Shown here in pieces: positions 5,773 to 34,517 of a stretch of DNA of 41,874 nucleotides. The notes below the pieces were generated by a model. The model was not told the DNA's origin and did not search any database. It saw nothing but the letters and a program-made list of their open reading frames with translations. Position 1 is the first letter of the stretch. The number at the start of each line of letters is the position of its first letter. Made by a program: the position numbers and the translations under genes. The DNA comes from Macrostomum lignano (taxonomy: Eukaryota): positions 1 to 41,874 of the forward strand of contig NIVC01004564.1 of NCBI GenBank assembly GCA_002269645.1, read 5' to 3'.

Positions 5773-5856
5773 TGCCTGATGGCGAAGTCGCAGAAGTTTT
5801 GCCGATTGGCCGAATACACAGCAATGAAGAATATGTAGGGACAGACGGAATAAATT

Positions 5857-9308: not shown

Positions 9309-9659
9309 AAAGCAATCGCATGCTGTTTAAACAGAATGACATTGAATACAGTCTTCCGTTGTCTCATACTCTTAGAATACCTCTGCCAAAAGAACAAACT
9401 AAATTTTCAGTACAGCTACCAAATCACTTATGATAGAAAAGAATCAGTCTGAATTATTATTTAGAACAAAGCAAACAATATACATTCGGCGCCAATGCGA
9501 GTGATTACATTTTGGCAAAATCATTATTAGAGACATCACAGAATCCGTACAGAAAACAAACTGACTTTTTATTTATTCAAGTCACGCAATATTAAATTCG
9601 CCTGGTGACAGAACATATGAAAAACTTACTTTGATTTGATTAATCATGAAACCATCCCA

Positions 9660-10527: not shown

Positions 10528-10537
10528 AAGCACTCAC

Positions 10538-10811
10538 TGCGGCAGCTGGTCCAACTGTGAGCGCACCACTTTGCCCAGCATAGCCAGCAGGTCTTCCTGT
10601 GTGTCGGAGTGAAACTGCCGCATGACGGTCACGCAGCCGGCAGTGAACGGCATCCCGTCGATGGTGCCAGCCCGTCTGGCTGTGAGAGTTGTGACGGACT
10701 TGTCAAACTGCAGAGCCTGCACAGCACCACTGATAGCCAGCAGCATCATGGCGGGCATCAGAGGCTGGCTCTCGGTGGTCACGTAGATCTTGCTTAGCGG
10801 CTCGTGCATGC
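10538..10811 (-). CDS. WASHC5: WASHC5 exon 7
   Basis: Acceptor CCCAG|GC; GMHEPLSKIYVTT..MRQFHSDTQEDLLAMLGKVVRS; donor CA|GTGAGT at 10538/10537. Confidence 0.9.
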
Positions 10812-10916
10812 CTGGGCAGGGCGAGGTGAGGTGTGGAATAAGAAAGAAATATACAGAATGTGGCCGTGCACGGACTACCAATCCAGGGTCTATCAGAAAA
10901 ATCTCTCGCCCCTCAC

Positions 10917-11673
10917 CGTTTGCCTCCAAGAAGGACACCACCTCGAACAGCAGATCGTTGTCCTCGGCCGGGTAGGGCTTAGTGGGGTCCCTGTAGTGCT
11001 CGTGAATCTCCGCTAGCAGAGAGTCGTTTAACGCGCCAAGCACCGCGTGCATGCCCTTGGAGTTGAGCCGGGACGAGCGGCAGAGCTGGCCGGCCAGCTG
11101 GCGCCTCAGCAGCTGCAGCTGTCCAACTCTCAGCAGGCTGTCCGTCAGCTGCTGCAGCTGGCGTTGCAGCCGGCCGGCCGCTCCTGCCAACAGTTTGGCC
11201 GGCGGCTGTCCGGTAGGCAGCAGGCTGTCGAATGGGCGCATCAGGTCGGCTAGGCCGGTCAGCTGATCCACCGCCAGCTTGTCTTTAGTCACGTGACGCT
11301 GAAATTGCCTTAGCAAAGTCTGCAAAGCGCTGACCAGCATGAAGCTGAGCAGGCGGTCCAAGCCGGACAGGCCGAAACTGTCCAGCGCCGTTTCCATGGC
11401 GGCCCAGACGCGCGAGTTCAGGACCTCCTGGCGGGACTTGGCATCGTACCAGGCGGCCATCTGGTCAATGTAGATAGTCTGCTTGGGATCCGTGACGCGC
11501 AGCAGCTCAGTTGCTAAGCGACCAATAAAATTAACGGCCCGATCGCCGGCCGGGGGCGGGAATTTGGGGATCGGGATGGCCTTGGACTGGTAGACCGATT
11601 GGAAGTCCTGCACCTTCTCGCGCAGGAAGCTGTTGCACTCCTGCTCGACGTTGTAGTTGATAATGCGGCTCAC
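10917..11673 (-). CDS. WASHC5: WASHC5 exon 6
   Basis: Acceptor CTCAG|GTG; VSRIINYNVEQECNSFLR..IPIPKF..FIGRL..GLSGLDRLL..YPAEDNDLLFEVVSFLEAN; donor G|GTGAGG. Confidence 0.97.
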
Positions 11674-12244
11674 CTGAGGGTTAGGGGGATGCCGAGTACG
11701 GGATCAGCTTGTTAGTGGCGTTCCATGTATCGAATAAGAAAGAATAGAAGAAGAAGAAATGAAGTTTGTTTCATTAGGAGATGAGATTACCCAATAGCTA
11801 AAATTCGAATTAGTCTGTCTATCAGCCTGTCTGTCACAATCGGATTATATTCCTTGGTTTTAACAGTTAATAAGAAATTAATCCTTGTGTGAAAGCTTGG
11901 AAACCAAAAACTAGTACACTCGTATTTTTTAAGCAACGTCTTGGTACCTTGGTGCGTTTGTCAAAGTTGATTTGGTATAAAGTCTTGGCGGTCCCTAGTT
12001 GTCTGTGACAAAGAGAGCCAGAGACCAACTAAAAGCGGCGCTAAGAGCCAGAAAACCTTTTTTGGCCTGGTCCACCAAAATCTACGTAAAATGATGGTCC
12101 AGTTAAACCATGTTCACCTAAACATACATAGATAGCATTTAGCGCCTTCTCAGATTCAAGGAATAGCTAAACAATCTGATACCAGCGGACGGCACTGAGA
12201 ATAGTTTTGCTAGTTTGCTAGTGTGGTCTATCTAAGGCATTATC

Positions 12245-12608
12245 GAGGGGACCGTAGCCCACTTGTCTGGCGCGGTGCTCTGATGTGCCAGCGGCCCAGG
12301 CTCGATTCCAAGTGCAGTCATTAATTTGGGGCTGAATTGGAATCTCGGCTTGGCTCTGCTCGTGCAATCAACGGCCTTGAGGGCCGACCCCCAAGGCACA
12401 GTGAAGTGTACATGCCTAACGATAAATAAAGTTAGGGCCGCTGTACACTCCTGTGTGAGTGTGTGCCTGTGCGTATGACTGCGTACGTATCCGCGCTTGT
12501 GTGCCTGCTCAGGGGAGTCAGCGGAATGGGCAGCAATGCCTCTCGCCGGTTGTGTGACAATTTCACTTAAAGTGCGCCATCTGGGTGCACACATCCCCCT
12601 GCATCTAA
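12245..12608 (+). mobile_element. tRNA-derived SINE, full length, with 12-bp target-site duplication (WASHC5 intron 5)
   Basis: Head GGGACCGTAGCCCACTTG (A-box-like) and GGCTCGATTCC (B-box-like). Flanked by TAAGGCATTATC at 12233-12244 and 12609-12620. The body recurs inverted at 14790-15080. Confidence 0.85.
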
Positions 12609-12757
12609 TAAGGCATTATCAAATAAACAGTCCATCTAAACAAACGTACACTGGTATGCGTTCTTGTGTGTCCGTGTCTATCTATGTGCCTTAGCGTCTT
12701 TCTGTCCTGATGTCTAAGTGGTAAATTCTAATCAAGCACCAAATAGAGTCCCAGTAC

Positions 12758-13201
12758 CTCCTCCTGCCAGATCTTCAGCCCGTAGATATTGACATAGTCC
12801 TGAATGTACTCAAATGACCGCCTGAAGCCGTCCATGCGCTCGCCTAGCGCCACCAGCCGGGCCTGCAGCTCATTAGCTCTGCCAGCCTTCGGATTAGCCG
12901 GGAAGATGAGCGCCTCGTGCAGAGCGAAAGCCACCTGCGCAACCAGCTCCTTCCTAATTCCGTCCTCCAGCAGCTTCTGCGGGTCCAGCTTCACAATGCC
13001 GACTAGGGTGGTCTTCATCGCCAGGATGCCCTCGCTGAATGTAGAAATCTCGTGGGTGAGCTGTGACACCTGGTAGCGCTCCTCCAGCATGCCGTAGTCC
13101 TTCACCTTGTCCTTGTCCAGCCGGGTTGGCAGCTCCTTCAGCTTGTGCGTCTGGATGCTGATGATCTCCGCTAGGCGCTTGAACATGGTCTTGGGGATCA
13201 C
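12758..13201 (-). CDS. WASHC5: WASHC5 exon 5
   Basis: CCCAG|GTG..GAG|GTACTG, 444 nt, phase 0-0; [59 protein letters not shown] is nearly identical to vertebrate strumpellin. Confidence 0.97.
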
Positions 13202-13235
13202 CTGGGAGTGGAGGGGCTCACTGCTGTCAGACATG

Positions 13236-14040
13236 GGCTAGGTTAGCAATCCATTCTATTCCTTTATCCATTTTGGCTAGGTTAGCAATCCATTCTATTC
13301 CTTTATCCATTTTGGCTAGATTAGTAATCCATTTTAATCCTTTATCCATGTTGGCTAGGTTAGCAATCCATTCTATTCCTTTATCCATTTTGGCTAGGTT
13401 AGCAATCCATTCTATTCCTTTATCCATATTGGCTAGGTTAGCAATCCATTCTAATCCTTTATCCATATTGGCTAGATTAGTAATCCATTTTAATCCTTTA
13501 TCCATGTTGGCTAGATTAGCAATCCATTCTATTCCTTTATCCATATTGGCTAGGTTAGCAATCCATTCTAATCCTTTATCCATATTGGCTAGATTAGTAA
13601 TCCATTTTAATCCTTTATCCATGTTGGCTAGGTTAGCAATCCATTCTATTCCTTTATCCATATTGGCTAGATTAGTAATCCATTTTAATCCTTTATCCAT
13701 GTTGGCTAGATTAGCAATCCATTCTAATCCTTTATCCATTTTGACTAGATTATCATACCAAACCATTCAAATCCCTTATTCATGTTGGCTAGATAAGCAA
13801 TCCTATATAATAAAATCCAATCTAATCTTTTATCCATGTTGGCTAGATTAGCAATCCATTCTAATCCCTTATTCATGTTGGCTAGATAAGCAATCCTATA
13901 TAATAAAATCCAATCTAATCTTTTATCCATGTTGGCTAGATTAGCAATCCATTCTAATCCCTTATTCATGTTGGCTAGATAAGCAATCCTATATAATAAA
14001 ATCCAATCTAATCTTTTATCCATTTTGGCTAGATTAGCAA
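13236..14040. repeat. 39-bp minisatellite TGGCTAGGTTAGCAATCCATTCTATTCCTTTATCCATTT, becoming a 39+54 = 93-bp higher-order unit after ~13760 (WASHC5 intron 4)
   Basis: Tandem copies; the 13-aa and 31-aa periodicity of the spurious ORFs confirms the unit sizes. Confidence 0.95.
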
Positions 14041-14166
14041 TCCAGTATATTACCTCATTTATGATAGATTAGAACTCGATTCTATTTCAATAAATAAATG
14101 ATACTCGTAACTTAACTAGTTGCTAGAAAAATCTAAATAGACTAATATCAAGGCGCTAAGGCTCAC

Positions 14167-14604
14167 CTGAAGCACCTTACGAACATAGGTGACTAACTCG
14201 GCAGAATAGTACTGGCTAACGCTAGCCAGATCAGGACTATTAGCCTGGCTAATTCTCAACAGCGGCTGCTCCATAGCAGTGGCCAGCTTGAGAAACATGG
14301 CCTTGAGCTGGATAGTAATGCGGGGGTTGCGCTGTATGCCGACCTGCATAAAGTTAGTGTAGGTGTCAATAATGACCCAGGCGTAGCTCAGGTCGGCCAC
14401 AATGTCCAGATGGAGCAGCACCTCCTCTTTAACGTTGATGATGCGCATCATCTGGTAGAGCTTGGCGCAGGTCTCCTGCAGGAATTGCACAACCTGCATG
14501 TTGGCGTCCAGCTGATGAAATTCTTGAACCTCGCGCAGCGCCTGCATCAGCTGGTCGACTTTCCGACCGGATTCGGTGGCGTTAGCGAAGTCCAGCTTGT
14601 CCAC
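14167..14604 (-). CDS. WASHC5: WASHC5 exon 4
   Basis: CGCAG|GTG..CAG|GTGAGC, 438 nt, phase 0-0; [57 protein letters not shown]. Confidence 0.97.
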
Positions 14605-14672
14605 CTGCGAGCAACAGCAGTGTTTGCGCTTTCAGAACTGCTTTAAAGATTTTACCTTCCCTGACAGAGAGC

Positions 14673-14735
14673 GCCACCTCAGATAGCGCCATCTTAGACA
14701 GCACCAGCTCAGGTAGCGCCACCTTAGCGCCATCA
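14673..14735. repeat. Short degenerate 15-bp repeat AGCGCCACCTCAGAT, x4-5
   Basis: Imperfect tandem copies in WASHC5 intron 3. Confidence 0.55.
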
Positions 14736-14789
14736 AGAATCAAGCTAACCTTGGTAGATAGGGCTATTTTGGCCACTATTTTTTTCAGT

Positions 14790-15218
14790 TAGCGACAGAG
14801 GGGCTGTGTGCACCCAGATGGCGCACTTTAAGCGACATTGTCACACAACCGACGAGAGGCAATAATGCCCATTCCGCCGACTCCCCTGAGCAGGCACACA
14901 AGCACGCGGATACGTACGCAGTCATACGCACAGGCACACACTCACACAGGAGTGTACAGCGGCCCTAACTTTATTTATCGTTAGGCATGTACACTTCACT
15001 GTGCCTTGGGGGTTGGCCCTTAAGGACGTTAATTGCACGAGCAGAGCCAAGCCAAGATTCCAATTTAGCCCCAAATTAATGTGAATGCAATAATTTAATT
15101 AGTTTAATTTTTCTTATTAGTCTAGTTTATTTAATTTAATTTAATTAATTTAATTTGTAATGAGCCTGGGTAACTGGCACATCAGAGCACCGCGCTGGAC
15201 CACTGAGCTACGGCCCCC
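14790..15218 (-). mobile_element. Second copy of the same tRNA-derived SINE, inverted, with an AT-rich insertion replacing its B-box (WASHC5 intron 3)
   Basis: The reverse complement begins GGGGCCGTAGCTCAGTGGTCCAGCGCGGTGCTCTGATGTGCCAG (tRNA-like A-box TAGCTCAGTGG). Its body matches 12330-12595 at roughly 94% by eye, including ~109 identical nt. A TAATT-rich insert occupies ~15085-15158. Confidence 0.85.
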
Positions 15219-15323
15219 TACAGCGCCACCATGGATGGCGCCATCAAATGCGAAGCGCCGCTCAAAAGCAGCTGCTTCAAGTATGACCAGATCCACCAAT
15301 ATATTCATAGTGAAGATTATTAC

Positions 15324-15481
15324 CTGAGCGGCCAAATTGGCGAACCAATCCTGCAGTTTGGCGTTGGCAGCCACCCTCGTTAGGGGTTTGGTGCCGCTAA
15401 ACACGTCGCTGAGCTCGCGCAATCGTTCAGAGCACTCCACCTTTAAAGCCTCCCAGGTGTCCGCCTTGCGGCTGAGTATGC
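15324..15481 (-). CDS. WASHC5: WASHC5 exon 3
   Basis: CACAG|GC..CAG|GTAATA; ILSRKADTWEALKVECSERLRELSDVFSGTKPLTRVAANAKLQDWF (human [30 protein letters not shown], recalled). Confidence 0.95.
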
Positions 15482-15567
15482 CTGTGTATGTATGCATGAG
15501 TCTGATTAAATCAGATTTTCACGTCCGGTAACCACACGTTTCCGTCAACTCTTAAGATCTTTCAGTC

Positions 15568-16431
15568 CTGCCCCGCTCTCTCCGATTCCTGTCCCACTCT
15601 CTCTCTCTGTTTCCTGTCCCGCTCTCTCCGGTTCCTGTCCCACTCTCTTCCCACTCTCTCTGTTTCCTGTCCCACTCTCTCTGGTCCCTGTCCCACTCTC
15701 TCTGTTTCCTGTCCCACTCTCTCTGTTTCCTGTCCCGCTCTCTCCGTTTCCTGTCCCACTCTCTCTGTTTCCTGTCCCACTCTCTCTGTTTCCTGTCCCG
15801 CTCTCTCCGTTTCCTGTCCCACTCTCTCTGTTTCCTGTCCCACTCTCTCCGGTTCCTGTCCCACTCTCTCTGCTTCCTGTCCCGCTCTCTCCGGTTCCTG
15901 TCCCGCTCTCTCTGTTTCCTGTCCCGCTCTCTCCGGTTCCTGTCCCGCTCTCTCTGTTTCCTGTCCCGCTCTCTCTGTTTCCTGTCCCACTCTCTCTGTT
16001 TCCTGTCCCACTCTCTTCCCACTCTCTCTGTTTCCTGTCCCACTCTCTCCGGTTCCTGTCCCACTCTCTCTGTTTCCTGTCCCACTCTCTCTGTTTCCTG
16101 TCCCACTCTCTCTGTTTCCTATCCCACTCTCTCCGGTTCCTGTCCCACTCTCTCCGGTTCCTGTCCCACTCTCTCTGTTTCCTGTCCCGCTCTCTCCGTT
16201 TCCTGTCCCACTCTCTCCGTTTCCTGTCCCGCTTCCTCCGTTTCCTGTCCCGCTCTCTCTGTTTCCTGTCCCGCTCTCTCCGGTTCCTGTCCCACTCTCT
16301 CCGGTTCCTGTCCCGCTTCCTCCGTTTCCTGTCCCGCTCTCTCCGGTTCCTGTCCCGCTTCCTCCGTTTCCTGTCCCGCTCTCTCCGGTTCCTGTCCCGC
16401 TTCCTCCGTTTCCTGTCCCGCTCTCTCCGTT
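15568..16431. repeat. 21-bp pyrimidine-rich minisatellite TCCTGTCCCACTCTCTCTGTT (WASHC5 intron 2)
   Basis: About 40 tandem copies; source of the EWDRKQR and GTGNRES ORFs. Confidence 0.96.
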
Positions 16432-16543
16432 TACGCAGAATGCCCTGTATTACCTCATCCCAATCAAAGGTTATCTGCAATTCTTTCTCTATAAGCTGGT
16501 TTCTTAGCCCTAGTTTGAGTTCAAAGTTCTGTCGGGCACTAAC

Positions 16544-16856
16544 CAGTGAAAACCTCCTTAAGCCGGAACTCAAACTGAGCAGTCAGCAGCAACAGCTGGA
16601 ACAGCTGCTCGCCATTGAACCGACTGTCGGACAGCACCGAGTCGCGCAGCTGCTTGCACAGCCGGCTTCGCTCCTGCGGCGGAGACAACGGAGTCGTGTG
16701 CAACATCAGCCAGCGAAGCGTCACATTGCAATCTCGGGCCGCATTGAGCAGCTGTGGAATCCGGTCCAACACCAGATTCTCAACCAGAACGCCTTCCTTT
16801 AATAAGTCGGCAGTGCGGGCAAGCAGCTCGCCGACTTTGGCGCCGTGCATAGCGGC
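16544..16856 (-). CDS. WASHC5: WASHC5 exon 2
   Basis: CGCAG|GCC..G|GTTAGT; LLKEGVLVENLVLDRIPQLLNAARDCNVTLRWLMLHT..LFQLLLLTAQFEFRLKE. Confidence 0.95.
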
Positions 16857-16974
16857 CTGCGTATTGTTCAGTTTGAATGGCTTTCCGTTAGTGTCGGGTT
16901 GGAAAAGTACAGCAGATACTTTTATTTTACACCAATACACCCAAAGCGACATCAGCAACCAATTCATCTAGGCA

Positions 16975-17182
16975 ACATCAGTGACCAATAAACTCAAGCA
17001 GCATCAGTGACCAATAAACCCAAAGCAGCATCAGTGACCAATATAGCAACATCAGTGACCAATAAACTCAAAGCAGCATCAGTGACCAATATAGCAACAT
17101 CAGTGACCAATACACATCTCGTACGTAAAACCAGTGACCAAAATATTAATAAATTGATAGCAAAATCGGTGACCAATAAATC
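16975..17182. repeat. Alternating 27/21-bp repeat built on GCATCAGTGACCAATA (WASHC5 intron 1)
   Basis: About 8 copies of the CAGTGACCAATA core. Confidence 0.85.
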
Positions 17183-17224
17183 AACCTTATGTTTATTTAA
17201 ATCAGCTGATTCTAAAAAACCCAC

Positions 17225-18199
17225 CTGCCGCTTAGCATTAGGCAGCGCAATGGAATTAGCGAGAGCCTTCGCCGCCGCCTTGTACGGCTGCCAGGCCTCG
17301 GCCAAGTTGACCAGCATGCCCATGTGCAGCGACAGTACCCAATTATCCGGAAAGAATTTGTCAACAATTTCTCGCATTTTCGCCTCCTCCAGGTGCAGCA
17401 GATCTGGACTAAAGTACAAACAGACGTATAGCATAGCAGCCTGGTGAGCCAGGGCGGTGCTCCGGTGCTCGGGAAAGGGGAACGAAGCCACCATGCTGTA
17501 CACATCGTCAGACCTCAGCCTATCAATGACCATCTGTACGAATCGGGGGTTAATCGGCACCCGGCTAAAATAACTCTCCGGATATTTGGCCGGCCGGCGG
17601 GCGTGCGGCGAGCTCGGATCGTACTCTGTACTGCGCAGCAGCTTGCACACGTCATCAATTTGAGTGCTGCTCCCGCTGGAGTGCCTGTAGTAAGCTACTA
17701 GCAGGCGTTCGCGCAACGGACCGGGAAATTTGGCCTCCACAGTCAGTAGCATGATGCCGTATAAGGCTAGCGATTCGCATAGCAACTGTTTGCCCTCCGG
17801 GTTAAGCAGCACAGTCTCCAGCATCTGCTGCACGTAGATACCATTCTCCAGGTCGCTCAGGTAAGTATTCAGCTTAATAACATAGCTATAGACGCTTTCA
17901 AATGTCTTATAGAACCGAGTCAATATCTCCAGGTGATTCTCGCGGAACTCCTCATCTAAGTCTTGCAATTCGGCTCGGGATTGAATTTTGTTTTCAAAGA
18001 ATTCCGGAGTGCGCAGATATTCGAAATCGAATATGATCTCGTGATAGCGCTGGCTCTCCGCATTAGTCTCCTGCTTGAAAGCGTTCGGCACAAATGCTGA
18101 CAGGTTTAACAGTTCCGAGATGATGCTGGAACCGCTGGATACAATTTTGAGCAGATTCCTGCCGCACAGATTACCCTCAGCTAGGAAGTCGCTCATCAT
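17225..18199 (-). CDS. WASHC5: WASHC5 exon 1
   Basis: ATG at 18199/18196; [70 protein letters not shown] matches the strumpellin N-terminus; donor CAG|GTGGGT. The eight exons total 3516 nt = 1171 aa + stop, with consistent phases. Confidence 0.98.
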
Positions 18200-18463
18200 G
18201 CATTTAATTGCTTTTTTAATCATCTTTCTTAAATAATTTACACTCCTTTTTACTAACAGTAGCAGGTTGATAAACGATCCTGTCCATTTGAGTTTTTTAT
18301 ACACTAATTTTCTTTTATTCTTACCGTCAGTAGGCGGAGATGCACACAATTTTATTACTAGCTATTGATTTCACCTGACTCTAATTTTTGTATTGGAGAA
18401 TTATCATTGTAAAACTGGATGGACATTCTAGGCTCTTTACTACTCTTAGCTTATGTACAATAA

Positions 18464-19778
18464 GGGAGAGGTTTCATCTTTCCGAAACGTCATATCTCCG
18501 ACACTTCAGCTGAGCAGCCTCGTTCACAACTCCGAAACTTCATATCTGCGTTAGGGATAGGATTAGGGTTAAGTTTGTCGGATTGAAGTTTCAGGGTATG
18601 ATGTGTCAGAGATATGAAGTGTCGGAGATATGGAGTGTCGGAGATATGGAGTGTCGGGGGAGATATGAAGTGTCGGAGATATGAAGTGTCGGAGATATGG
18701 AATGTCAGAGATATGAAGTGTCGGAGATATGGAGTGTCGGAGATATGAAGTGTCGGAGATATGAAGTGTCGGAGATATGAAGTGTCGGAGATATGGAGTG
18801 TCGGAGATATGAAGTGTCGGAGATATGGAGTGTCGGAGATATGAAGTGTCGGAGATATGAAGTTTTAGAGATATGAAGTGTCGGAGATATGAAGTGTCGG
18901 AGATATGAAGTGTCGGAGATATGAAGTGTCGGATATATGAAATTTTAGAGATATGAAGTGTCGGAGATATGAAGTGTCGGAGATATGGAGTGTCGGAGAT
19001 ATGAAGTGTCGGAGATATGGAGTGTCGGAGATATGAAGTGTCGGAGATATGAAGTTTTAGAGATATGAAGTGTCGGAGATATGAAGTGTCGGAGATATGA
19101 AGTGTCGGAGATATGGAGTGTCGGAGATATGGAGTGTCGGACATATGAAGTGTCGGAGATATGAAGTGTCGGACATATGAAGTGTCGGAGATATGAAGTG
19201 TCGGAGATATGAAGTGTCGGAGATGTGAAGCGTCGGAGATATGGAATGTCGGAGATATGAAGTGTCGGAGATATGAAGTGTCGGAGATATGAAGTGTCGG
19301 AGATATGAAGTGTCGGAGATATGAAGTGTCGGAGATATGGAGTGTCGGAGATATGAAGTGTCGGAGATATGGAGTGTCGGAGATATGAAGTGTCGGACAT
19401 ATGAAGTGTCGGAGATATGGAGTGTCGGAGATATAAAGTGTCGGAGATATGGAATGTCGGAGATATGTGTCGGAGATATGAAGTGTCGGAGATATGATGT
19501 GTCGGATATATGAAGTGTCGGAGATATGAAGTGTCGGAGATATGAAGTGTCGGAGATATGAAGTGTCGGAGATATGAAGTTTTAGAGATATGAAGTGTCG
19601 GAGATATGAAGTGTCGGAGATATGAAGTGTCGGAGATATGAAGTGTCGGAGATATGAAGTGTCGGAGATATGAAGTGTCGGAGATATGAAGTTTTAGAGA
19701 TATGAAGTGTCGGAGATATGAAGTGTCGGAGATATGAAGTGTCGGAGATATGATGTGTCGGATATATGAAAGCATCCC
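18464..19778. mobile_element. Mutator/foldback-like non-autonomous element whose right-arm 16-mer subrepeat (GTGTCGGAGATATGAA) has expanded to ~75 copies
   Basis: Termini GGGAGAGGTTTCATCTTTCCGA and TCGGATATATGAAAGCATCCC are imperfect inverted repeats. Flanks TGTACAATAA (18454-18463) and TGTACAATTA (19779-19788) match 9/10. The left arm carries the 16-mer in reverse orientation (CATATCTCCGACACTTCA). Central TTAGGGATAGGATTAGGGTTAAG. Confidence 0.7.
18580..19770. repeat. 16-bp minisatellite GTGTCGGAGATATGAA
   Basis: Continuous tandem copies; source of the ISPTLHISDTSYLRHF ORFs. Confidence 0.97.
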
Positions 19779-20426: not shown

Positions 20427-20783
20427 TCACCTGTCGCAGCAGCCGAGGGCGTCGCTATTAGTGAGCAGATTAACCATGGGCTCAGCCAGGCTGAGCAGCC
20501 GGAACGGTGGGTGCTGAGCAATCTGCCTGGCATGCGGTAGGCTGTCGGTGATCCAGAAGTGCTCAAATAGGCCCTGACCGTCGGTAAATCGGCGCCACGA
20601 TTCGCGAGGAAACACAGCGTGCGGAACGAAAGCGCTGACAGCGCTGGCGCCAAGAGATTTCAGGGCGGCGGCGCACTGAATCAGAGTGCCGCCTGTCTGC
20701 ACCAGGTCGTCAACTATCACCACGTGGCGACCGGCTGGGGAGCCTTCCTTGACGCGGATAACTCGGCTGTCGCCGTCGCGGAC
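20427..20783 (-). CDS. Ribose-phosphate pyrophosphokinase, plant-type class II (PRS3/PRS4-like), last exon
   Basis: AAAAG|GTC; VRDGDSRVIRVKEGSPAGRHVVIVDDLVQTGGTLIQC..SAFVPHAVFPRESWRRF..FWITDSLP..FRLLSLA; contains the PRPP-binding loop. Phase 0 agrees with the previous exon. Confidence 0.9.
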   Translation of the reverse strand, partial: VRDGDSRVIRVKEGSPAGRHVVIVDDLVQTGGTLIQCAAALKSLGASAVSAFVPHAVFPRESWRRFTDGQGLFEHFWITDSLPHARQIAQHPPFRLLSLAEPMVNLLTNSDALGCCDR

Positions 20784-20844
20784 CTTTTAAACATGAATGG
20801 GGGAGAGAATGCAGGGCTTTTGGGGCAACCAATCTGAATAAATG

Positions 20845-21255
20845 AGGTGGTGAGTGCTGTAGGGTGGTTGGTACTGTGGGGTGGTGGGTGCTGTAGGGTG
20901 GTTGGTACTGTGGGGTGGTGGGTGCTGTAGGGTGGTTGGTACTGTGTGGTGGTGGGTGCTGTAGGGTGGTTGGTACTGTGGGGTGGTGGGTGCTGTAGGG
21001 TGGTTGGTACTGTGGGGTGGTGGGTGCTGTAGGGTGGTTGGTACTGTGTGGTGGTGGGTGCTGTAGGGTGGTTGGTACTGTGGGGTGGTGGGTGCTGTAG
21101 GGTGGTTGGTACTGTGGGGTGGTGGGTGCTGTAGGGTGGTTGGTACTGTGGGGTGGTGGGTGCTGTAGGGTGGTTGGTACTGTGTGGTGGTGGGTGCTGT
21201 GGTTGGTGGGTGTTGTGGGGTGGTGGGTGCTGTGGGGTGGTGGGTGCTGTGGGGT
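20845..21255. repeat. 34-bp G-rich minisatellite GTGGTGGGTGCTGTAGGGTGGTTGGTACTGTGGG (PRS intron)
   Basis: About 11 tandem copies. Confidence 0.95.
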
Positions 21256-21300
21256 TGGTGTTGTTTCTATACCAATTAGAAAATCAGGTAATGCGAATAC

Positions 21301-21699
21301 CTTCAGGCAGGTGATGAGATCGTCGGCGTGTTCAGGCACGCTAAATGACAGATGAAATCGCTTAAACGCGCCCTCGTCGGGAAAGGCGATTGCTAGGCCA
21401 GGCTGGGCTCTGCGCAGGTCATAGAGCTGCGGATAGAGCAGGCTCATAGCACTGGCTAGCAGCGGCACAACGCAATCGGTGAAGTAGAACCGCTCCTGCA
21501 GCGCGTGAATGTCGTACACAACCAGCTGGCAGGGACCGTGGCGTGTTAAGGGTGTAGAGTTGAGTAGCCTGGCTACGGACATCGCCGTGGCCACTTGACC
21601 TTCACGATCTACGCGCTCCATGGTGCCGCATGGAAAATAGGGCAACAAAAGGGTCAGCGAGCGGACAAAATAGCGAGGCAGACTGTGGATTAGCGACAC
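21301..21699 (-). CDS. Class II ribose-phosphate pyrophosphokinase, middle exon
   Basis: CGCAG|GTG..AAG|GTATTC, 399 nt; [47 protein letters not shown] matches Arabidopsis PRS4 motifs ([44 protein letters not shown]; recalled). Confidence 0.93.
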
Positions 21700-21759
21700 C
21701 TGCGGGCGGCAAGCGATAAGGAATTTTAGTGAGGTTGACAAATTGGAGTTCATTAGTTT

Positions 21760-23427
21760 GACTGTGTGCACCTGAGTGCTGATAAGAGAGGACTGTGTGC
21801 ACCTGAGTGCTGATAAGAGAGGACTGTGTGCACCTGAGTGCTGATAAGAGGGAACTGTGTGCACCTGAGTGCTGATAAGAGGGGACTGTGTGCACCTGAG
21901 TGCTGATAAGAGGGAACTGTGTGCACCTGAGAGCTGATAAGAGAGGACTGTGTGCACCTGAGTGCTGATAAGAGAGGACTGTGTGCACCTGAGTGCTGAT
22001 AAGAGGGGAATGTGTGCACCTGAGTGCTGATAAGAGGGGAATGTGTGCACCTGAGTGCTGATAAGAGGGGACTGTGTGCACCTGAGTGCTGATAAGAGGG
22101 AACTGTGTGCACCTGAGTGCTGATAAGAGGGGACTGTGTGCACCTGAGTGCTGATAAGAGGGAACTGTGTGCACCTGAGGGCTGATAAGAGGGAACTGTG
22201 TGCACCTGAGTGCACCTGAGTGCTGATAAGAGGGAACTGTGTGCACCTGAGTGCTGATAAGAGGGGACTGTGTGCACCTGAGTGCTGATAAGAGGGGACT
22301 GTGTGCACCTGAGTGCTGATAAGAGGGGACTGTGTGCACCTGAGTGCTGATAAGAGGGGACTGTGTGCACCTGAGTGCTGATAAGAGAGGACTGTGTGCA
22401 CCTGAGAGCTGATAAGAGAGGACTGTGTGCACCTGAGTGCTGATAAGAGAGGACTGTGTGCACCTGAGTGCTGATAAGAGGGGACTGTGTGCACCTGAGT
22501 GCTGATAAGAGGGGAATGTGTGCACCTGAGTGCTGATAAGAGGGGACTGTGTGCACCTGAGTGCTGATAAGAGGGAACTGTGTGCACCTGAGTGCTGATA
22601 AGAGGGGAATGTGTGCACCTCAGTGCTGATAAGAGGGGACTGTGTGCACCTGAGTGCTGATAAGAGGGAACTGTGTGCACCTGAGTGCTGATAAGAGGGA
22701 ACTGTGTGCACCTGAGTGCACCTGAGTGCTGATAAGAGGGGACTGTGTGCACCTGAGTGCTGATAAGAGGGAACTGTGTGCACCTGAGTGCTGATAAGAG
22801 GGGACTGTGTGCACCTGAGTGCTGATAAGAGGGGACTGTGTGCACCTGAGTGCTGATAAGAGGGGACTGTGTGCACCTGAGTGCTGATAAGAGAGGACTG
22901 TGTGCACCTGAGTGCTGATAAGAGGGGACTGTGTGCACCTGAGTGCTGATAAGAGGGGACTGTGTGCACCTGAGTGCTGATAAGAGGGGACTGTGTGCAC
23001 CTGAGTGCTGATAAGAGTGCACCTGACTAAGAGTGATAATCAGTGATTAAGAGTGATAATCACTCTGTGTGCACCTGAGTGCTGATAAGAGGGGACTGTG
23101 TGCACCTGAGTGCTGATAAGAGGGGACTGTGTGCACCTGAGTGCTGATAAGAGGGGACTGTGTGCACCTGAGTGCTGATAAGAGGGGACTGTGTGCACCT
23201 GAGTGCTGATAAGAGTGCACCTGACTAAGAGTGATAATCAGTGATTAAGAGTGATAATCACTCTGTGTGCACCTGAGTGCTGATAAGAGGGGACTGTGTG
23301 CACCTGAGTGCTGATAAGAGGGGACTGTGTGCACCTGAGTGCTGATAAGAGGGGAATGTGTGCACCTGAGTGCTGATAAGAGGGGACTGTGTGCACCTGA
23401 GTGCTGATAAGAGGGGACTGTGTGCAC
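21760..23427. repeat. 31-bp minisatellite GTGTGCACCTGAGTGCTGATAAGAGGGGACT (PRS intron)
   Basis: About 50 copies, with a duplicated ~50-bp interruption at ~23015 and ~23213; source of the HSGAHSPLLSALRCTQ ORFs. Confidence 0.97.
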
Positions 23428-23469
23428 TGGTTAAGGAGGGCCGTGCATTAATAACCAAAAGTTGCTTAC

Positions 23470-23694
23470 CTGCTCAAAGATTACGCTGGGCTCGTGCAAG
23501 CTAGCCAAGAAGACAACATCCTGGCCCGCCATTTGTTGAACATTGTGTATAAAAATATTGGGAAATCCGTCTGCAAATCGATCCCAGCTGACGGAGTCTT
23601 TGTAAACAATGAGGCGACTCTTTTGGCCAGCGGCGGTGGCAGCTGAGTGATCAGCGATCTCCTTGGCTAGCTGGGCCATTGAGCTGTGCGCCAA
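23470..23694 (-). CDS. Class II ribose-phosphate pyrophosphokinase, first recognisable coding exon (true start unresolved)
   Basis: (RPLW)[56 protein letters not shown] resembles PRS4 [41 protein letters not shown] (recalled); donor CAG|GTAAGC. The first in-frame ATG is at 23679. Confidence 0.88.
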
Positions 23695-23804
23695 CAGCCA
23701 CAGCGGTCTGCTTTGATCAGCCAGTGTGGATGAAGCCGCGGGATGGGAAAATACAATGCTCTTCTTCCCTACCCTGGGTCAACAAAACTACGCTTAGTTT
23801 ACTA

Positions 23805-26490
23805 AATATCACTCAGTGAGCAGTCTAATATCACTCAGTGGACAGTCTAATCACTCAATGAGCAGTCTTATCACTCAGTGAGCAGTCTAATCACTCAATG
23901 AGCAGTCTAATCACTCAGTGAGCAGTCTAATCACCCAGTGAGCAGTCTAATATCACTCAGTGAGCAGTCTAATCACTCAATGAGCAGTCTAATCACTCAG
24001 TGAGCAGTCTAATCACCCAGTGAGCAGCCTAATATCACTCAGTGAGCAGTCTAATCACTCAATGAGCAGTCTTATCACTCAGTAAGCAGTCTAATCACTC
24101 AGTAAGCAGTCTAATCACTCAATGAGCAGTCTAATCACTCAGTGAGCAGTCTAATCACTAAGTGAGCAGTCTAATATCACTCAGTGAGCAGTCTAATATC
24201 ACTCAGTGAGCAGTCTAATATCACTCAGTAAGCAGTCTAATATCACTCACTGAGCAGTCTAATCACTCAGGGAGCAGTCTAATCACTCAGTGAGCAGTCT
24301 AATCACTCAGTGAGCAGTCTAATATCACTCAGTGAGCAGTCTAATCACTCAATGAGCAGTCTTATCACTCAGTAAGCAGTCTAATCACTCAATGTGAGCA
24401 GTCTAATCACTCAGTGAGCAGTCTAATCACTAAGTGAGCAGTCTAATATCACTCAGTGAGCAGTCTAATATCACTCAGTGAGCAGTCTAATATCACTCAG
24501 TAAGCAGTCTAATATCACTCACTGAGCAGTCTAATCACTCAGGGAGCAGTCTAATCACTCAGTGAGCAGTCTAATCACTCAGTGAGCAGTCTAATATCAC
24601 TCAGTGAGCAGTCTAATCACTCAATGAGCAGTCTTATCACTCAGTGAGCAGTCTAATCACTCAATGAGCAGTCTAATCACTCAGTGAGCAGTCTAATCAC
24701 CCAGTGAGCAGTCTAATATCACTCAGTGAGCAGTCTAATCACTCAATGAGCAGTCTAATCACTCAGTGAGCAGTCTAATATCACTCAGTGAGCAGTCTAA
24801 TCACTCAATGAGCAGTCTAATCACTCAGTGAGCAGTCTAATCACTCAGTAAGCAGTCTAATCACTCAATGAGCAGTCTAATCACTCAGTAAGCAGTCTAA
24901 TCACTCAGTGAGCAGTCTAATATCACTCAGTGAGCAGTCTAATCACTCAGTAAGCAGTCTAATATCACTCAGTGAGCAGTCTAATATCACTCAGTGAGCA
25001 GTCTAATATCACTCAGTGAGCAGTCTAATATCACTCAGTGAGCAGTCTAATATCAATCAGCGAGCAGTCTAATATCACTCAGTGAGCAGTCTAATATCAC
25101 TCAGTGAGCAGTCTAATCACTCAGTGAGCAGTCTAATATCACTCAGTGAGAAGTCTAATGTCACTCAATGAGCAGTCTAATATCACTCAGTGAGCAGTCT
25201 AATATCACTCAGTGAGCAGTCTAATATCACTCAGTGAGCAGTCTAATCACTCAGTAAGCAGTCTAATATCACTCAGTGAGCAGTCTAATATCACTCAGTG
25301 AGCAGTCTAATATCACTCAGTGAGCAGTCTAATATCAATCAGCGAGCAGTCTAATATCACTCAGTGAGCAGTCTAATATCACTCAGTGAGCAGTCTAATC
25401 ACTCAGTGAGCAGTCTAATATCACTCAGTGAGCAGTCTAATGTCACTCAATGAGCAGTCTAATATCACTCAGTGAGCAGTCTAATATCATTCAGTGAGCA
25501 GTCTAATATCACTCAATGAGCAGTCTAATCACTAAGTGAGCAGTCTAATCGCTCAGTGAGCAGTCTAATCACTCAGTGAGCAGTCTAATCACTCAGTGAG
25601 CAGTCTAATATCACTCAGTGAGCAGTCTAATCACTCAGTGAGCAGTCTAATATCACTCAATGAGCAGTCTAATCACTAAGTGAGCAGTCTAATCACTCAG
25701 TGAGCAGTCTAATCACTCAGTGAGCAGTCTAATCACTCAGTGAGCAGTCTAATCACTCAATGAGCAGTCTAATCACTAAGTGAGCAGTCTAATCACTCAG
25801 TGAGCAGTCTAATCACGCAGAGAGCAGTCTAATCACTTACTGAGCAGTCTAATCACTCAGGGAGCAGTCTAATCACTCAATGAGCAGTCTAATCACTCAG
25901 TGAGCAGTCTAATCACTCAGTGAGCAGTCTAATCACTCAGTGAGCAGTCTAATCACTAAGTGAGCAGTCTAATCACTCAGTGAGCAGTCTAATCACTAAG
26001 TGAGCAGTCTAATCACTCAGTGAGCAGTCTAATCACGCAGAGAGCAGTCTAATCACTCAGTGAGCAGTCTAATATCACTCAGTGAGCAGTCTAATCACTC
26101 AATGAGCAGTCTTATCACTCAGTAAGCAGTCTAATCACTCAATGAGCAGTCTAATCACTCAGTGAGCAGTCTAATCACTAATTGAGCAGTCTAATCACTC
26201 AGTGAGCAGTCTAATCACTAAGTGAGCAGTCTAATCACTAAGTGAGCAGTCTAATCACTCAGTGAGCAGTCTAATCACGCAGAGAGCAGTCTAATCACTC
26301 AGTGAGCAGTCTAATCACGCAGAGAGCAGTCTAATCACTCAGTGAGCAGTCTAATCACTCAGTGAGCAGTCTAATATCACTCAGTGAGCAGTCTAATCAC
26401 TAAGTGAGCATTCTAATCACTCAGTGAGCAGTCTAATTACTCAGTGAGCAGTTTAAATACTCAGTGAGCAGTCTAATTACTCAGTGAGCA
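23805..26490. repeat. 2.7-kb minisatellite of mixed 18/20-bp units CACTCAGTGAGCAGTCTAAT(AT)
   Basis: Continuous tandem copies; each unit has the internal dyad CACT-C-AGTG. Confidence 0.98.
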
Positions 26491-27242: not shown

Positions 27243-28844
27243 TCAGTCTTCGTCTGACGAATGCTCCGATTCGAACTCCGGACTTCCATAGGACTCAGCA
27301 GCCGCCTCTTCGTCTTCATCATAGTAATAATCCCCAACAGCCTCTCTAGTGTAAGATTCCCCAGCCGGTTCCTCCTGCGAATATCGTCGCCTGGCCATGG
27401 CGGCCGCGGCCTCGGCGCCGCCAACCCCGGTCTCGCTGGCGACCAGGTGGCCGACAATGGCGTCGCTAGCCGTCAGCAGCTCTCCGGCCGCGTCGGTCAG
27501 CATCTCGTCTAGCAGCTGCTCGGCGATGGCGTCAGTCAGCTGGGTTGGTCGGAAAGCGGCGCCTCCGGACGACGGATCAGCGGCGGCGGCGGTGGTCAGG
27601 AAGTCCCGATAACGATCACGCTGCGACCGGATGCTCTGGACCTCCGCCGGGGTCAGCTGCAGCACCGCTGGCTGCCTGCTGCCGCCGAGTCCGCTGCTTT
27701 CGCCAAGTTCAGCGGCCGCAGCCGGCCGTCTGGAGCCGCCGGTTTTAACAAATCGCAGCGGATCTGGCGGCCCTGCCTGCCAGCGGCCGTCAACAGAGCA
27801 TATCGGCTCGTCGCCGGCGGCCAGAGCGGCGGCCCAGCGATCGCGAATGTCGTCACCTTCGGTCTCCAGCTGGCTGAGCCGATGGTCGATGTTGCACAGC
27901 TCTGCTAAGCTTCCAGCGATGCTACCGCGGATCAGCGAGCCGGCCGAAGCCGACAGAGCCGGCGTGGCCGACGGGACGAAGCCGCCGCCGGCACGGCCGC
28001 CGCCGCCTCCTCTCAAGCCGAGCTCGCGCTTGACCGCGGCCAGCACCTCGGCAACGATGCGGGACCGCTCCGAGTCGGAGCTGGCGGCGGCGGCGGCCAC
28101 TTGGCCACTTGAAGTCGCCGGCTGGTCCGCGACAACGGCGGCCGTACGCGCTGGAGCTGGAGCGGATGGCACAGCAGTAGTCGGTGGGCGATAACGCGAC
28201 GATGGCTGGCGTTGCTGCTGTTGTTGTTGCGACACAGCAGACGGAGCGACTCGGGCACTCCTGGGTCTTGTAGGAAACGGCAAGGCTCCTGGACGGCGCT
28301 TGGCGGCGCCACCAGTGGAGCCGCGTCCAAGCAGACGTTCGGCCTCCAGCTCGGCCATCCTAGTCGCATACTGTTGAACTTCCTCGCGTAGGCGGCGCAG
28401 CTCCAACGCTTCGTGGCGCTTCATTGAGGCGGCGTTCTCGCGCGGATGCCTTGAAGAGGCGGCGCCGGCGCCAGTGGGATTGGGGCGCCAGGCGCGATCA
28501 GTGTCGCGAACTGGAGGCGAATGACTTCTCGATGGCAGCTGCTGTCTTTGCTGCCGCTGCTGCTGTTGCTGCTCGGCCGTTTTCCTAGAAACCACCGCCC
28601 GGCTCTGGCGCAGCCGCCGTTCAACATTTTTCGGGCCCGGCGGCAGGCCGGCGTCCAGCCTCTCGCGGCTGTGCTGCAGCTCTCGCCTGGCCAGCCGGCC
28701 CATCAGCTCCATTCGGCGCGGATCGATTCGTTTCTCAATGAGCAGCGGCTGCGGATTGGCCGGCAGCCGGGTGACCAGGTTGCTGGGGGACGCCCGATGG
28801 TCCAGGTTGAACTGCAGCTGGTTGACCGCCTGGCTTAAATCCAT
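27243..28844 (-). CDS. KIAA0753: KIAA0753/Moonraker (OFIP)-like centriolar protein, single coding exon, 533 aa
   Basis: N-terminal VNQLQFNLDHRASPSNLVTRLPANPQPLLIEK..LARRELQ resembles human [33 protein letters not shown]. C-terminal PTQLTDAIAEQLLDEMLTDAAGELLTASDAIVGHLVASE resembles [39 protein letters not shown]. Human sequences recalled, not searched. The middle is low-complexity. Confidence 0.75.
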   Translation of the reverse strand: MDLSQAVNQLQFNLDHRASPSNLVTRLPANPQPLLIEKRIDPRRMELMGRLARRELQHSRERLDAGLPPGPKNVERRLRQSRAVVSRKTAEQQQQQRQQRQQLPSRSHSPPVRDTDRAWRPNPTGAGAASSRHPRENAASMKRHEALELRRLREEVQQYATRMAELEAERLLGRGSTGGAAKRRPGALPFPTRPRSARVAPSAVSQQQQQQRQPSSRYRPPTTAVPSAPAPARTAAVVADQPATSSGQVAAAAASSDSERSRIVAEVLAAVKRELGLRGGGGGRAGGGFVPSATPALSASAGSLIRGSIAGSLAELCNIDHRLSQLETEGDDIRDRWAAALAAGDEPICSVDGRWQAGPPDPLRFVKTGGSRRPAAAAELGESSGLGGSRQPAVLQLTPAEVQSIRSQRDRYRDFLTTAAAADPSSGGAAFRPTQLTDAIAEQLLDEMLTDAAGELLTASDAIVGHLVASETGVGGAEAAAAMARRRYSQEEPAGESYTREAVGDYYYDEDEEAAAESYGSPEFESEHSSDED

Positions 28845-32281: not shown

Positions 32282-32890
32282 ATGGATGGCCTGGATGAAC
32301 AGGATTTGAAGCGAGCGGAGCTTGATTACTGCCTAAAAAATAGTCTGAACTTCGTAGACACACAGGCGCTTGCCGAAGCCAGGAAAGGTAACGGCGACGT
32401 CAGCGAAGCGGATAATGAAGAGGAAACACCGGATGAGTGGCTCGTGGACGTTCGCTATACAAGCCGGCTGCTCAAGAAGGCAAACGAAATGCGCATTAAA
32501 AAGCGCCTCTGCGACCTCACCATTGGCTTGAAAGACGGCAAGCTGGAGGCGCACAAAAGCATGCTGGCCGCCGGTTCACCTTTCTTCAAGCATTTGACGG
32601 AAACGACTCGCGCTTCTACGTTAAATTTCTTCCACGTGACCTGCAGCGTGGCGGACATCCTGTTCGACTTTATGTACACCGGTGAGGTCAGCATAGAGAA
32701 GGCGGAGAAGCTGGGCCGCTCGGAGCGACAAATGCTACGCGAGAAAGCCGAGCTGTTCGAAGTTGACCAGCAGCTTCAAGCGCTGTGGGATCGGCTTGGA
32801 GTCGCTACTAAGAATTCCGGCAAGCAGAGCCAGCAGGCAGAACGCCAAGAGGTGCCATTGGAGGATGCCAGTGAAATAGTAAAACGCAAG
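32282..32890 (+). CDS. BTB-BTB-BACK protein with possible jacalin-like C-terminus, exon 1 (first BTB)
   Basis: LCDLTIGLKDGKLEAHKSMLAAGSPFF..ILFDFMYTGEV is a BTB/POZ signature; donor AAG|GTGAGT at 32890/32891, phase 0. Confidence 0.88.
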
Positions 32891-32993
32891 GTGAGTTAGC
32901 AAGTGCTACTCGTATTCTTCTAGCACGAAACAAGGCTTGGAGCTGCTCCGGTAAAGTACAAAGTATTGTACATACTCTGCCACTTCCCCGCAG

Positions 32994-34517
32994 GTTCTCT
33001 ACATGAACGATCGTCGAAAACAGGGCGACTTCGCGGACTGGAAGATCCGCATCAGCGCCGTAGACATTCCTGTCAGCAAGGTTTTCCTGGCCGCTAGCAG
33101 CACCTATTTCGCCGACTTCTTTGCCAGAAATCCCATGGAGGCCAAGTCTGAAACTTACACTTTGACGGAGCTTAATCGTCGAACTTTTCGAAAGGTGCTC
33201 AACTTTATTTATACTGGTCACGTGATCACCACGGGACGAGACCTGGCCGAACTCAAGGACCTCCTGTTTCAGGCTAGCTACCTGGGCGTAGGCGATCTAT
33301 CTAGCCGACTTGTGGAGGAGTTCGAGTCGCGTCTTACCACCGAGAACTGCTTCGCAATGTTCTCTTATTCGAACAGCATAAACTGCCGTCAGTTATTTAA
33401 ATCGGTCTCGCACTTCATTGGTCGCATAGGTGCCAAGTGGTCTCACAACTCTGGCTTCCTGGGTCTTGAATTCAATGATCTGCGCGCTGCGCTGCTGAAC
33501 CCGGATCTGCGATTCGATGGCGACGACTCTGACTCTGATGAGGAATGCAGCTGCCTTCCCTGGCCAGTCGACTTTGAGTCGCGCACGCTTGACTTGCTCA
33601 TTGCTTGGATCCGCGTTGATCGCGTCCGACGATCAAGTCACGTGACTGAACTGTTCGACCTGGTTGACCGGCTGGGCAGGCTACCGTACACCGGCCGGAG
33701 AGAAGAGATGCACCAACGGCTGCCAGCAGAACTGAACAATGTGATGTCTGCGTACTACTTGAAGCTAATAAAAGAACAGCAAGGAAAAACTTGCCCAACC
33801 AAGCAACCATCGCCGCAGACCAAACAGTCGCCCATCCGAGCTCGTCGCTACCTGTTTCCCACCCAGCTGCTCATGTCCCGGGAGTTTCACCTAGCGGGTC
33901 CTCAGCTGCCGGGCTCTGCCCTGCTTCCGACAAAATTACAGTCCTCTCCGGATGAGGAAGAGCTCAGAGGCTGCTGGCAACTGTCGCCAACTGAATGGCG
34001 CTTGCAGTCGATTGAAATTCAAGCGTCCGATCAAGAGCTGACTTGGCTATCTGGCCTCAAACTGATCTATCAGCGGTACCCAATGCTCGCTAAGTCTGAA
34101 GATCCCCCAACCGAACTGCGCACCTTCTGCTGCGGTTACCGCGGCTCGTTCCAGCACAGTATCGAACTGGACGAGACGGAGAGAGTGGTTCAGCTTGGCC
34201 TTGGCAGCGCGACTGCTGGCAGCAGCGGCCGCAGAAGTTATATCAGCTGGTTGAAGACCTGCAAGGGTCGACGACTTCAAGTACCAGTGGCGGCGGCAGC
34301 GTCAGAGACGACGAGTGTCAGCAACAGCAACCAGAGCGCCGACGAGAACCCAACTACAGTTGTCAAATCACCGAAGAAAAGTCACGGCTTCTTGCACGGC
34401 TTTGGATTGCGCTTCAGCGAGGCTGGAGGCGGCGCCATGACCATTGTCTGGGCAGTCGAAACCGACGTTGACGGGCTGGGCGACTCTCCTTGGAGCTCTG
34501 TGGTCGAGAATGAATGA
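32994..34517 (+). CDS. Same gene, exon 2 (second BTB, BACK domain, jacalin-like beta region); spliced product ~710 aa
   Basis: Acceptor TTCCCCGCAG|GTT CTC TAC ATG is in frame with exon 1 across a 103-nt intron. ADWKIRISAVDIPVSKVFLAASSTYF..FRKVLNFIYTG is BTB; LTTENCFAMFSYS..FLGLEFNDLRAALLNPDL..LLIAWIRVDRVRR is BACK. Confidence 0.9.
   Translation, partial: VLYMNDRRKQGDFADWKIRISAVDIPVSKVFLAASSTYFADFFARNPMEAKSETYTLTELNRRTFRKVLNFIYTGHVITTGRDLAELKDLLFQASYLGVGDLSSRLVEEFESRLTTENCFAMFSYSNSINCRQLFKSVSHFIGRIGAKWSHNSGFLGLEFNDLRAALLNPDLRFDGDDSDSDEECSCLPWPVDFESRTLDLLIAWIRVDRVRRSSHVTELFDLVDRLGRLPYTGRREEMHQRLPAELNNVMSAYYLKLIKEQQGKTCPTKQPSPQTKQSPIRARRYLFPTQLLMSREFHLAGPQLPGSALLPTKLQSSPDEEELRGCWQLSPTEWRLQSIEIQASDQELTWLSGLKLIYQRYPMLAKSEDPPTELRTFCCGYRGSFQHSIELDETERVVQLGLGSATAGSSGRRSYISWLKTCKGRRLQVPVAAAASETTSVSNSNQSADENPTTVVKSPKKSHGFLHGFGLRFSEAGGGAMTIVWAVETDVDGLGDSPWSSVVENE

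Follow-up and report, generated by a model that had tools for sequence, protein, structure and literature searches.

The window analysed here is a complete contig of the flatworm Macrostomum lignano (NIVC01004564.1, 41,874 bp), which carries on its minus strand (23721..20427) a gene with three exons and two introns. Judged by its sequence, the product is a class II (subclass 1) phosphoribosyl pyrophosphate (PRPP) synthase. Taken together, the results make it very probable that this gene is one of two near-identical class II PRPS genes of M. lignano, that it was inherited vertically and that it specifies an active enzyme. A 353-kb contig carries the second copy (PAA76673.1), which is collinear with the analysed locus; the two proteins differ by only 3/335 residues. 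The gene is intact, and the 12:3 ratio of synonymous to non-synonymous changes among the 15 coding differences between the copies, the three non-synonymous ones being conservative, shows that it is under purifying selection. The spliced frame comprises 335 codons followed by TGA, and its translation is 100% identical to GenBank PAA47127.1, deposited as 'hypothetical protein BOX15_Mlig028349g1, partial [Macrostomum lignano]'. This entry can now be named class II (subclass 1) ribose-phosphate diphosphokinase, a step that has little weight beyond annotation. In a first-pass annotation, made from the letters of the window, the locus had been read as a plant-type class II enzyme in an animal-type genome, with three exons in which class II motifs were quoted; all four motifs are present in the spliced 335-codon frame.

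Class II signatures of the predicted protein

The predicted protein displays the domain order of the PRPP synthase superfamily, with an N-terminal Pribosyltran_N domain (PF13793, 35.6 bits for a cut-off of 25) ahead of a C-terminal type I phosphoribosyltransferase domain (PF00156, Pribosyltran, 34.8 bits for a cut-off of 26.3). The general NCBIfam model for ribose-phosphate diphosphokinases (TIGR01251) matched at 1.4e-30 with 106 bits, slightly below its 113-bit cut-off, as expected for a class II enzyme. Class I PRPP synthases from the PDB matched residues 32-317 at only 1e-19 to 1e-7. The best matches listed from the protein database, about 120 in number, had E values of 1e-113 to 1e-94 and identities of 46-59%, and many of them are named 'ribose-phosphate pyrophosphokinase 4-like'. 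Identity to the proteins so named from animals, to Capsaspora and to plant PRS4 lay at 48-57%. The animal sequences among these listed matches came from 13 phyla (Porifera, Cnidaria, Mollusca, Annelida, Nemertea, Brachiopoda, Bryozoa, Priapulida, Nematoda, the last with Trichuris, Echinodermata, Hemichordata, Cephalochordata and Tunicata); the non-animal ones came from Capsaspora and other unicellular holozoans, and from the plants Neltuma, Prosopis and Turnera, as PRS4.

We then aligned 60 sequences, using E. coli Prs (from the K-12 genome) and human PRPS1 (318/318 residues identical to PDB 8dbc_A) as class I references, and rooted a neighbour-joining tree with class I. The class II clade, in which both Macrostomum copies are included, received 100% bootstrap. 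In the same alignment, the Macrostomum protein is about 52% identical to class II sequences versus 22-27% to class I (human PRPS1, E. coli Prs), and at the 46 columns that separate the two classes it carries the class II residue in 39 cases and the class I residue in one. The class II assignment proposed in the first-pass annotation is thus borne out, and the protein does not group with the class I sequences.

A remodelled loop, together with differences in the FLAG-region and at the C-terminus, has been described as characteristic of class II (PMC13252144). In the regulatory flexible loop, the Macrostomum protein has CGTMER where class I has ARQD (P(C/Y)F(P/G)YARQD), and the equivalent of class I Arg96 is gone; the Cys at the first loop position is a variant of the 'T(T/G)MER' type. 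The segment FADGFPN aligns with class I FSNQE(T/V), with no Glu at the position of human E39, the FLAG-region glutamate that contacts adenine N6 and whose loss is a class II trait (PMC13252144). The C-terminus reads ...LLTNSDALGCCDR, with a gap opposite human NGESVSYLFSHVPL, and the allosteric/filament-interface region of class I, SVSYLF, is absent. The lack of class I motifs, which had been noticed from the letters, was thereby confirmed in the alignment against human PRPS1 and E. coli Prs.

The catalytic residues, on the other hand, are common to both classes. Class I enzymes (human PRPS1/2 and PRPSAP1/2, E. coli Prs, B. subtilis Prs) belong to the same two-domain phosphoribosyltransferase-type fold family and have the same reaction, and they share with the Macrostomum protein the catalytic His (DxH), the Asp of PD.G, the flexible-loop Lys and Arg and the ribose-5-phosphate loop, DD....GT; it is the adenine-contacting Glu39, Arg96, the ARQD loop and the C-terminal allosteric/filament residues that the Macrostomum protein lacks. 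All catalytic residues are kept, at D147/H149, P191-D192-G194, K217-V-R219 and D242-D243...G249-T250 (PAA47127.1 numbering), and they align with human D128/H130, D171, K194/R196 and D220/D221...G227/T228, the match of K-V-R to K-E-R requiring a one-residue shift of the MAFFT alignment.

The predicted enzyme would take the beta,gamma-diphosphoryl group from ATP and attach it to C1 of ribose 5-phosphate, yielding PRPP and AMP. Class II enzymes escape allosteric control by phosphate or ADP/GDP and, in plants, use several nucleoside triphosphates as donors; they form small oligomers and do not co-assemble with class I subunits (PMC12238573, PMC13252144). Plant enzymes of the PRS3/PRS4 type from spinach and Arabidopsis provided the evidence for independence from phosphate, for insensitivity to ADP inhibition and for a broad range of donors (as cited in PMC12238573, PMC13252144), and the class II enzyme of the amphioxus Branchiostoma is active with ATP and does not bind class I subunits (PMC13252144). 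From the spinach and Branchiostoma enzymes we infer by analogy that the flatworm enzyme would need no activation by phosphate, would show no feedback inhibition by ADP or GDP and would probably have a relaxed specificity for the nucleotide donor. It would form small homo-oligomers that stay outside class I complexes, co-assembly with class I subunits not being expected.

Gene structure and the start of translation

All features of the gene described below lie on the minus strand. Exon 1 (23721..23470, 84 codons) ends in VIFEQ at the donor GAGCAG|GTAAGC and contains the class II FLAG-region motif (23580-23548). Intron 1 (21700..23469, 1770 nt) is a GT..AG intron of phase 0 between FEQ and VS, with the boundaries GAGCAG|GTAAGC...CCCGCAG|GTG. 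Exon 2 (21699..21301, 133 codons) carries the class II motif of the regulatory flexible loop (21642-21613), the catalytic His motif (21516-21481) and a further quoted class II motif (21387-21355), and its last codon is the Lys of the catalytic K-V-R. Intron 2 (20784..21300, 517 nt), again GT..AG and of phase 0, falls between CLK and VR (CTGAAG|GTATTC...TTAAAAG|GTC), so that exon 3 (20783..20427, 118 codons and the TGA stop at 20429-20427) opens with the remainder of the catalytic flexible loop, VRDGDSR. Two further motifs follow in exon 3: VVIVDDLVQTGGT (20723-20685), the ribose-5-phosphate loop, and FWITDSLPHARQIAQHPPFRLLSL (20558-20487), a C-terminal motif of metazoan type.

Both introns had been described as canonical GT-AG introns filled with minisatellites, and this description holds. 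As determined with Tandem Repeats Finder, a 31-bp minisatellite makes up 94% of intron 1 (21760-23427, about 52 copies) and a 34-bp minisatellite makes up 80% of intron 2 (20846-21260, about 12 copies). The introns of the sister copy occupy the same two positions with other repeat numbers, 824 nt for intron 1 and 584 nt for intron 2, and their lengths thus differ between copies about two-fold and by about 13%, respectively. The 31-bp array of intron 1 is itself broken twice by a variant block of about 60 bp (GTGCACCTGACTAAGAGTGATAATCAGTGATTAAGAGTGATAATCACTCTG...), at 23016-23075 and 23214-23273, with a spacing of 198 bp, which indicates a higher-order repeat inside the minisatellite.

The reading frame is open upstream of 23721, yet it has no in-frame genomic ATG. 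In GenBank, both copies have 'partial' models that open with the same GCT codon. An N-terminal beta-strand, PLWLLAHSS (23706-23680), whose counterparts in the alignment are VLLFAHPS in amphioxus and IKIFSG in human PRPS1, precedes the first ATG of the genomic sequence (23679). We rejected this internal ATG as the start, since its use would delete a first beta-strand that is conserved in both classes, and the real coding sequence must therefore begin at or before 23721. The same argument corrects the product size of about 320 residues given in the first-pass annotation, whose three-exon model stands.

The spliced leader of M. lignano (CGGTCTCTTACTGCGAAGACTCAATTTATTGCATG, 35 nt) has ATG as its last three bases, and trans-splicing affects about 30% of the genes of this species (PMC8629364). 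Directly upstream of the annotated coding sequence lies a pyrimidine-rich stretch (23722..23760) that we regard as a putative outron with a spliced-leader acceptor. In the sister copy, the GCT is preceded by a polypyrimidine-CAG sequence, ...TTTTCCCATCCCGCGGCTTCATCCACACAG|GCT, which forms a good 3' acceptor (CACACAG|GCT). Joining of the leader (...TTGCATG) to GCTGATCAA at 23721 would place its ATG before GCT GAT CAA and give MADQSRPLW... in frame. It is fairly probable that the initiator ATG is supplied by the spliced leader in this manner, and the 'partial' status of PAA47127.1 is probably explained by a start codon donated in this way. In-frame AG acceptors located further upstream (..GGGAAGAAG|AGC) were judged unlikely, the context there being purine-rich and including two non-synonymous differences between the copies. 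Neither the spliced-leader sequence nor any Rfam family matched within the window.

The putative acceptor of the analysed copy departs from that of its sister. It reads CACACTG|GCT, with TG and not AG as the acceptor dinucleotide (23724-23722; base 23723), and none of the closest AGs downstream is in frame with the terminal ATG of the spliced leader. If the AG of the sister copy is the trans-splice acceptor, the analysed copy has lost it. This TG, which could reflect either a mistake in the assembly or genuine damage to the analysed copy, speaks against a working gene, and one could suppose that we are dealing with a decaying or non-catalytic duplicate, either a pseudoenzyme or a gene crippled at its 5' end, next to a functional sister. 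Besides the CTG found here for the CAG of the sister copy, pseudoenzymes have often arisen among PRPS proteins (Priapulus offers one of class II subclass 1), and the protein has an unusual loop Cys (PCGTMER versus the consensus PTGTMER) and a Met in place of a Lys conserved in metazoans (ATAMS). However, the Cys and the Met are present in both copies, and plants, which have active enzymes, show Phe in place of that Lys. The frame is uninterrupted, no catalytic residue has been lost, the excess of synonymous changes between copies indicates constraint, and the lone T/A difference at the acceptor could be an assembly error. A decaying duplicate is therefore very unlikely, and we favour an intact gene for a predicted active enzyme.

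Origin of the flatworm gene

The position of the Macrostomum protein within class II was taken from diagnostic columns and Hidden Markov Model (HMM) scores and not from the tree, because the latter lacks resolution inside this class. Thirty-nine columns distinguish metazoans from plants and algae; at these, the protein carries the metazoan residue 24 times, the plant residue eight times and neither of them seven times. Profiles built from four random metazoans of different phyla were also compared with a plant HMM in 40 trials. The metazoan HMMs scored the Macrostomum protein above the plant HMM by 42-81 bits in 40/40 trials, and held-out metazoan controls gave differences of 52-162 bits.

Comparison with individual class II enzymes points the same way. 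The protein is 52% identical over its full length to the class II subclass 1 enzyme of Branchiostoma lanceolatum (CAH1247366.1), with which it has in common the class II loop, the FLAG-region and C-terminal features and the catalytic residues. Both share the C-terminal sequence FWITDS.PHARQI.QHPPF.LL, the motif PHARQIAQHPPFRLL being nearly identical to its amphioxus counterpart. Unlike the Branchiostoma enzyme, the Macrostomum protein sits on a long branch, has PCGTMER (Cys for Thr) and a Met for the Lys of ATAK, terminates in a short Cys-rich tail, ALGCCDR, and is encoded with no genomic ATG. Plant class II PRS4 (Neltuma, Prosopis, Turnera) matches with 51-53% identity and E values of about 1e-95, and its class-defining motifs are alike; plants have FWITDSCP.TVKA, whereas Macrostomum has the holozoan versions PYFP.GTMER, LPRYFVRS and FWITDSLPHARQ. 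The term 'plant-type' is a historical label and makes no statement of origin. Because almost every invertebrate phylum has the gene, vertical descent from a class II gene of Holozoa, followed by heavy lineage-specific change, is by far the simplest reading.

Intron positions, mapped from trimmed exact tblastn cores used as anchors, were compared among Ephydatia, Actinia, Lingula, Capsaspora, Trichuris suis and Turnera; Turnera and Trichuris suis each had one ambiguous junction interval. Six positions (KD|VIF, LP|RY, TAK|TL, VIP|RL, IKE|G and C.K|A) are common to the sponge (Ephydatia), the sea anemone (Actinia) and the brachiopod (Lingula). Of these, two are found in Capsaspora and three or more in Trichuris suis.

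Several results weigh against vertical descent. The Macrostomum introns (FEQ|VS, CLK|VR) coincide with 0/6 of these conserved holozoan positions. The path from Macrostomum to the class II node of the neighbour-joining tree is supported by bootstrap values of at most 41% (2-41%), and the long branches of this tree (plants, tunicates, Trichuris and Macrostomum) cluster together as an artefact. Finally, the metazoan HMMs score the Macrostomum protein no better than unicellular-holozoan HMMs do. Since no introns are shared, they give no positive support for vertical descent; orthology is not contradicted either, as introns can be lost and gained.

These observations could also be taken to suggest that the gene was acquired horizontally in the flatworm lineage from a plant, an alga, a protist or a bacterium. 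The identity to plants (about 51%) is about equal to that to metazoans (about 52%), the tree pairs Macrostomum with Trichuris (41%) in a weak larger group with plants and an alga (22%), and none of the conserved holozoan intron positions is kept. However, the intron positions of the plant Turnera differ as well, with none common to Macrostomum. The separating columns favour metazoans over plants by 24 to 8, the metazoan profiles outscored the plant profile in every subsample, and the C-terminal PHARQI.QHPPF.LL is common to Branchiostoma and Lingula and is not found in plants. Inheritance is also more parsimonious for a gene present in nearly every sampled invertebrate phylum. We consider horizontal acquisition highly improbable. 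The first-pass annotation had offered two origins, an ancestral eukaryotic enzyme lost in most animals or an old horizontal gain. Ancestral retention agrees with our results; loss in most animals does not, given the matches in 13 animal phyla, and a horizontal gain is not favoured by the columns and HMM scores just cited.

If the gene descended vertically, its structure has changed considerably, as two private phase-0 introns stand in place of the six conserved holozoan positions. A possible but tentative scenario, which we hold somewhat less probable than its opposite, is that the gene was rebuilt in its own lineage, with loss of the six ancestral introns, gain of the two minisatellite introns and transfer of the initiator ATG to the spliced leader. 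The loss of all six ancestral introns would perhaps have occurred through a processed retrocopy. Under such a scenario, a single A-to-T change at the acceptor could silence the analysed copy, and the locus would be a compact example of intron turnover and of spliced-leader-dependent initiation, not a novelty in PRPP metabolism.

Published context and genomic setting

Class II PRPS has been reported 'across most metazoans, excluding Craniata' and goes back to the last common ancestor of eukaryotes (Karki et al., Nat Commun 2025, PMC12238573). Holozoan class II genes share splice junctions, and the craniate loss coincides with the expansion of class I (PMC12238573). The persistence in many invertebrates of a second PRPP route that is insensitive to feedback, and its loss in craniates, have already been described (PMC12238573, PMC13252144). 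In the survey of a more recent preprint, which places the sister copy PAA76673.1 in class II subclass 1, M. lignano is the only flatworm (Karki et al. 2026, PMC13252144). The first-pass annotation had itself stated that novelty would be lost if class II enzymes proved widespread and already described in this lineage, and this is the case (PMC12238573, PMC13252144). The gene is genuine and its class was correctly recognized, but its biology is ordinary and already catalogued. Relative to these two papers, what appears to be new is the absence of conserved intron positions, the lack of a genomic start codon and the TG at the putative acceptor. M. lignano, which is genetically transformable and relies on stem cells, could serve to probe the role of class II PRPS in animals, although this would be an application and not a discovery.

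Directly downstream of the PRPS gene and on the same strand lies a gene for strumpellin/WASHC5 (WASH complex subunit 5; 18349..10534), with at least five exons. Its five open reading frame (ORF) pieces cover positions 1-1001 of the 1084 of the Pfam model, and its introns also hold minisatellites (13236-14044 and 15566-16432). The upstream neighbour is an uninterrupted ORF of 533 codons on the minus strand (27243-28844, about 60% GC), for which no Pfam family scored above threshold, a 'moonraker' match being sub-threshold (E = 5e-4). At the equivalent place, the sister contig has an annotated gene of 532 aa with no domain. Two ORFs on the plus strand, 32282-32899 and 33003-34517, adjoin each other; each encodes a BTB/POZ domain, and the second also a BACK domain. 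They probably represent either a tandem pair or the exons of a single gene; the sister contig is annotated with a single 710-aa BTB gene at the equivalent of 32282-34517.

Contamination or misassembly, in which the locus would lie outside the flatworm genome, found no support beyond the contig being short (42 kb) and highly repetitive, and is effectively refuted by the collinear second copy on the 353-kb contig (97.7% identity over 9.8 kb of upstream flank), by the strumpellin and BTB/BACK genes on either side, by minisatellites of the same style in the PRPS introns, the neighbour's introns and the intergenic DNA, and by the agreement of the spliced model with the deposited annotation. The first-pass annotation had likewise considered contamination unlikely, and the misassembled foreign contig that it had envisaged as a counter-case is at odds with the second collinear copy and with the matching deposited annotation.

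Tandem minisatellites with units of 16 to 43 bp account for some 13.6 kb, or close to a third of the contig, in introns and intergenic DNA. The largest arrays are located at 5852-9309, 23808-26490, 21760-23427 and 18597-19770. Examples are a 16-bp unit present in 216 copies and a 20-bp unit present in 130 copies, the latter array lying directly upstream of the PRPS gene.

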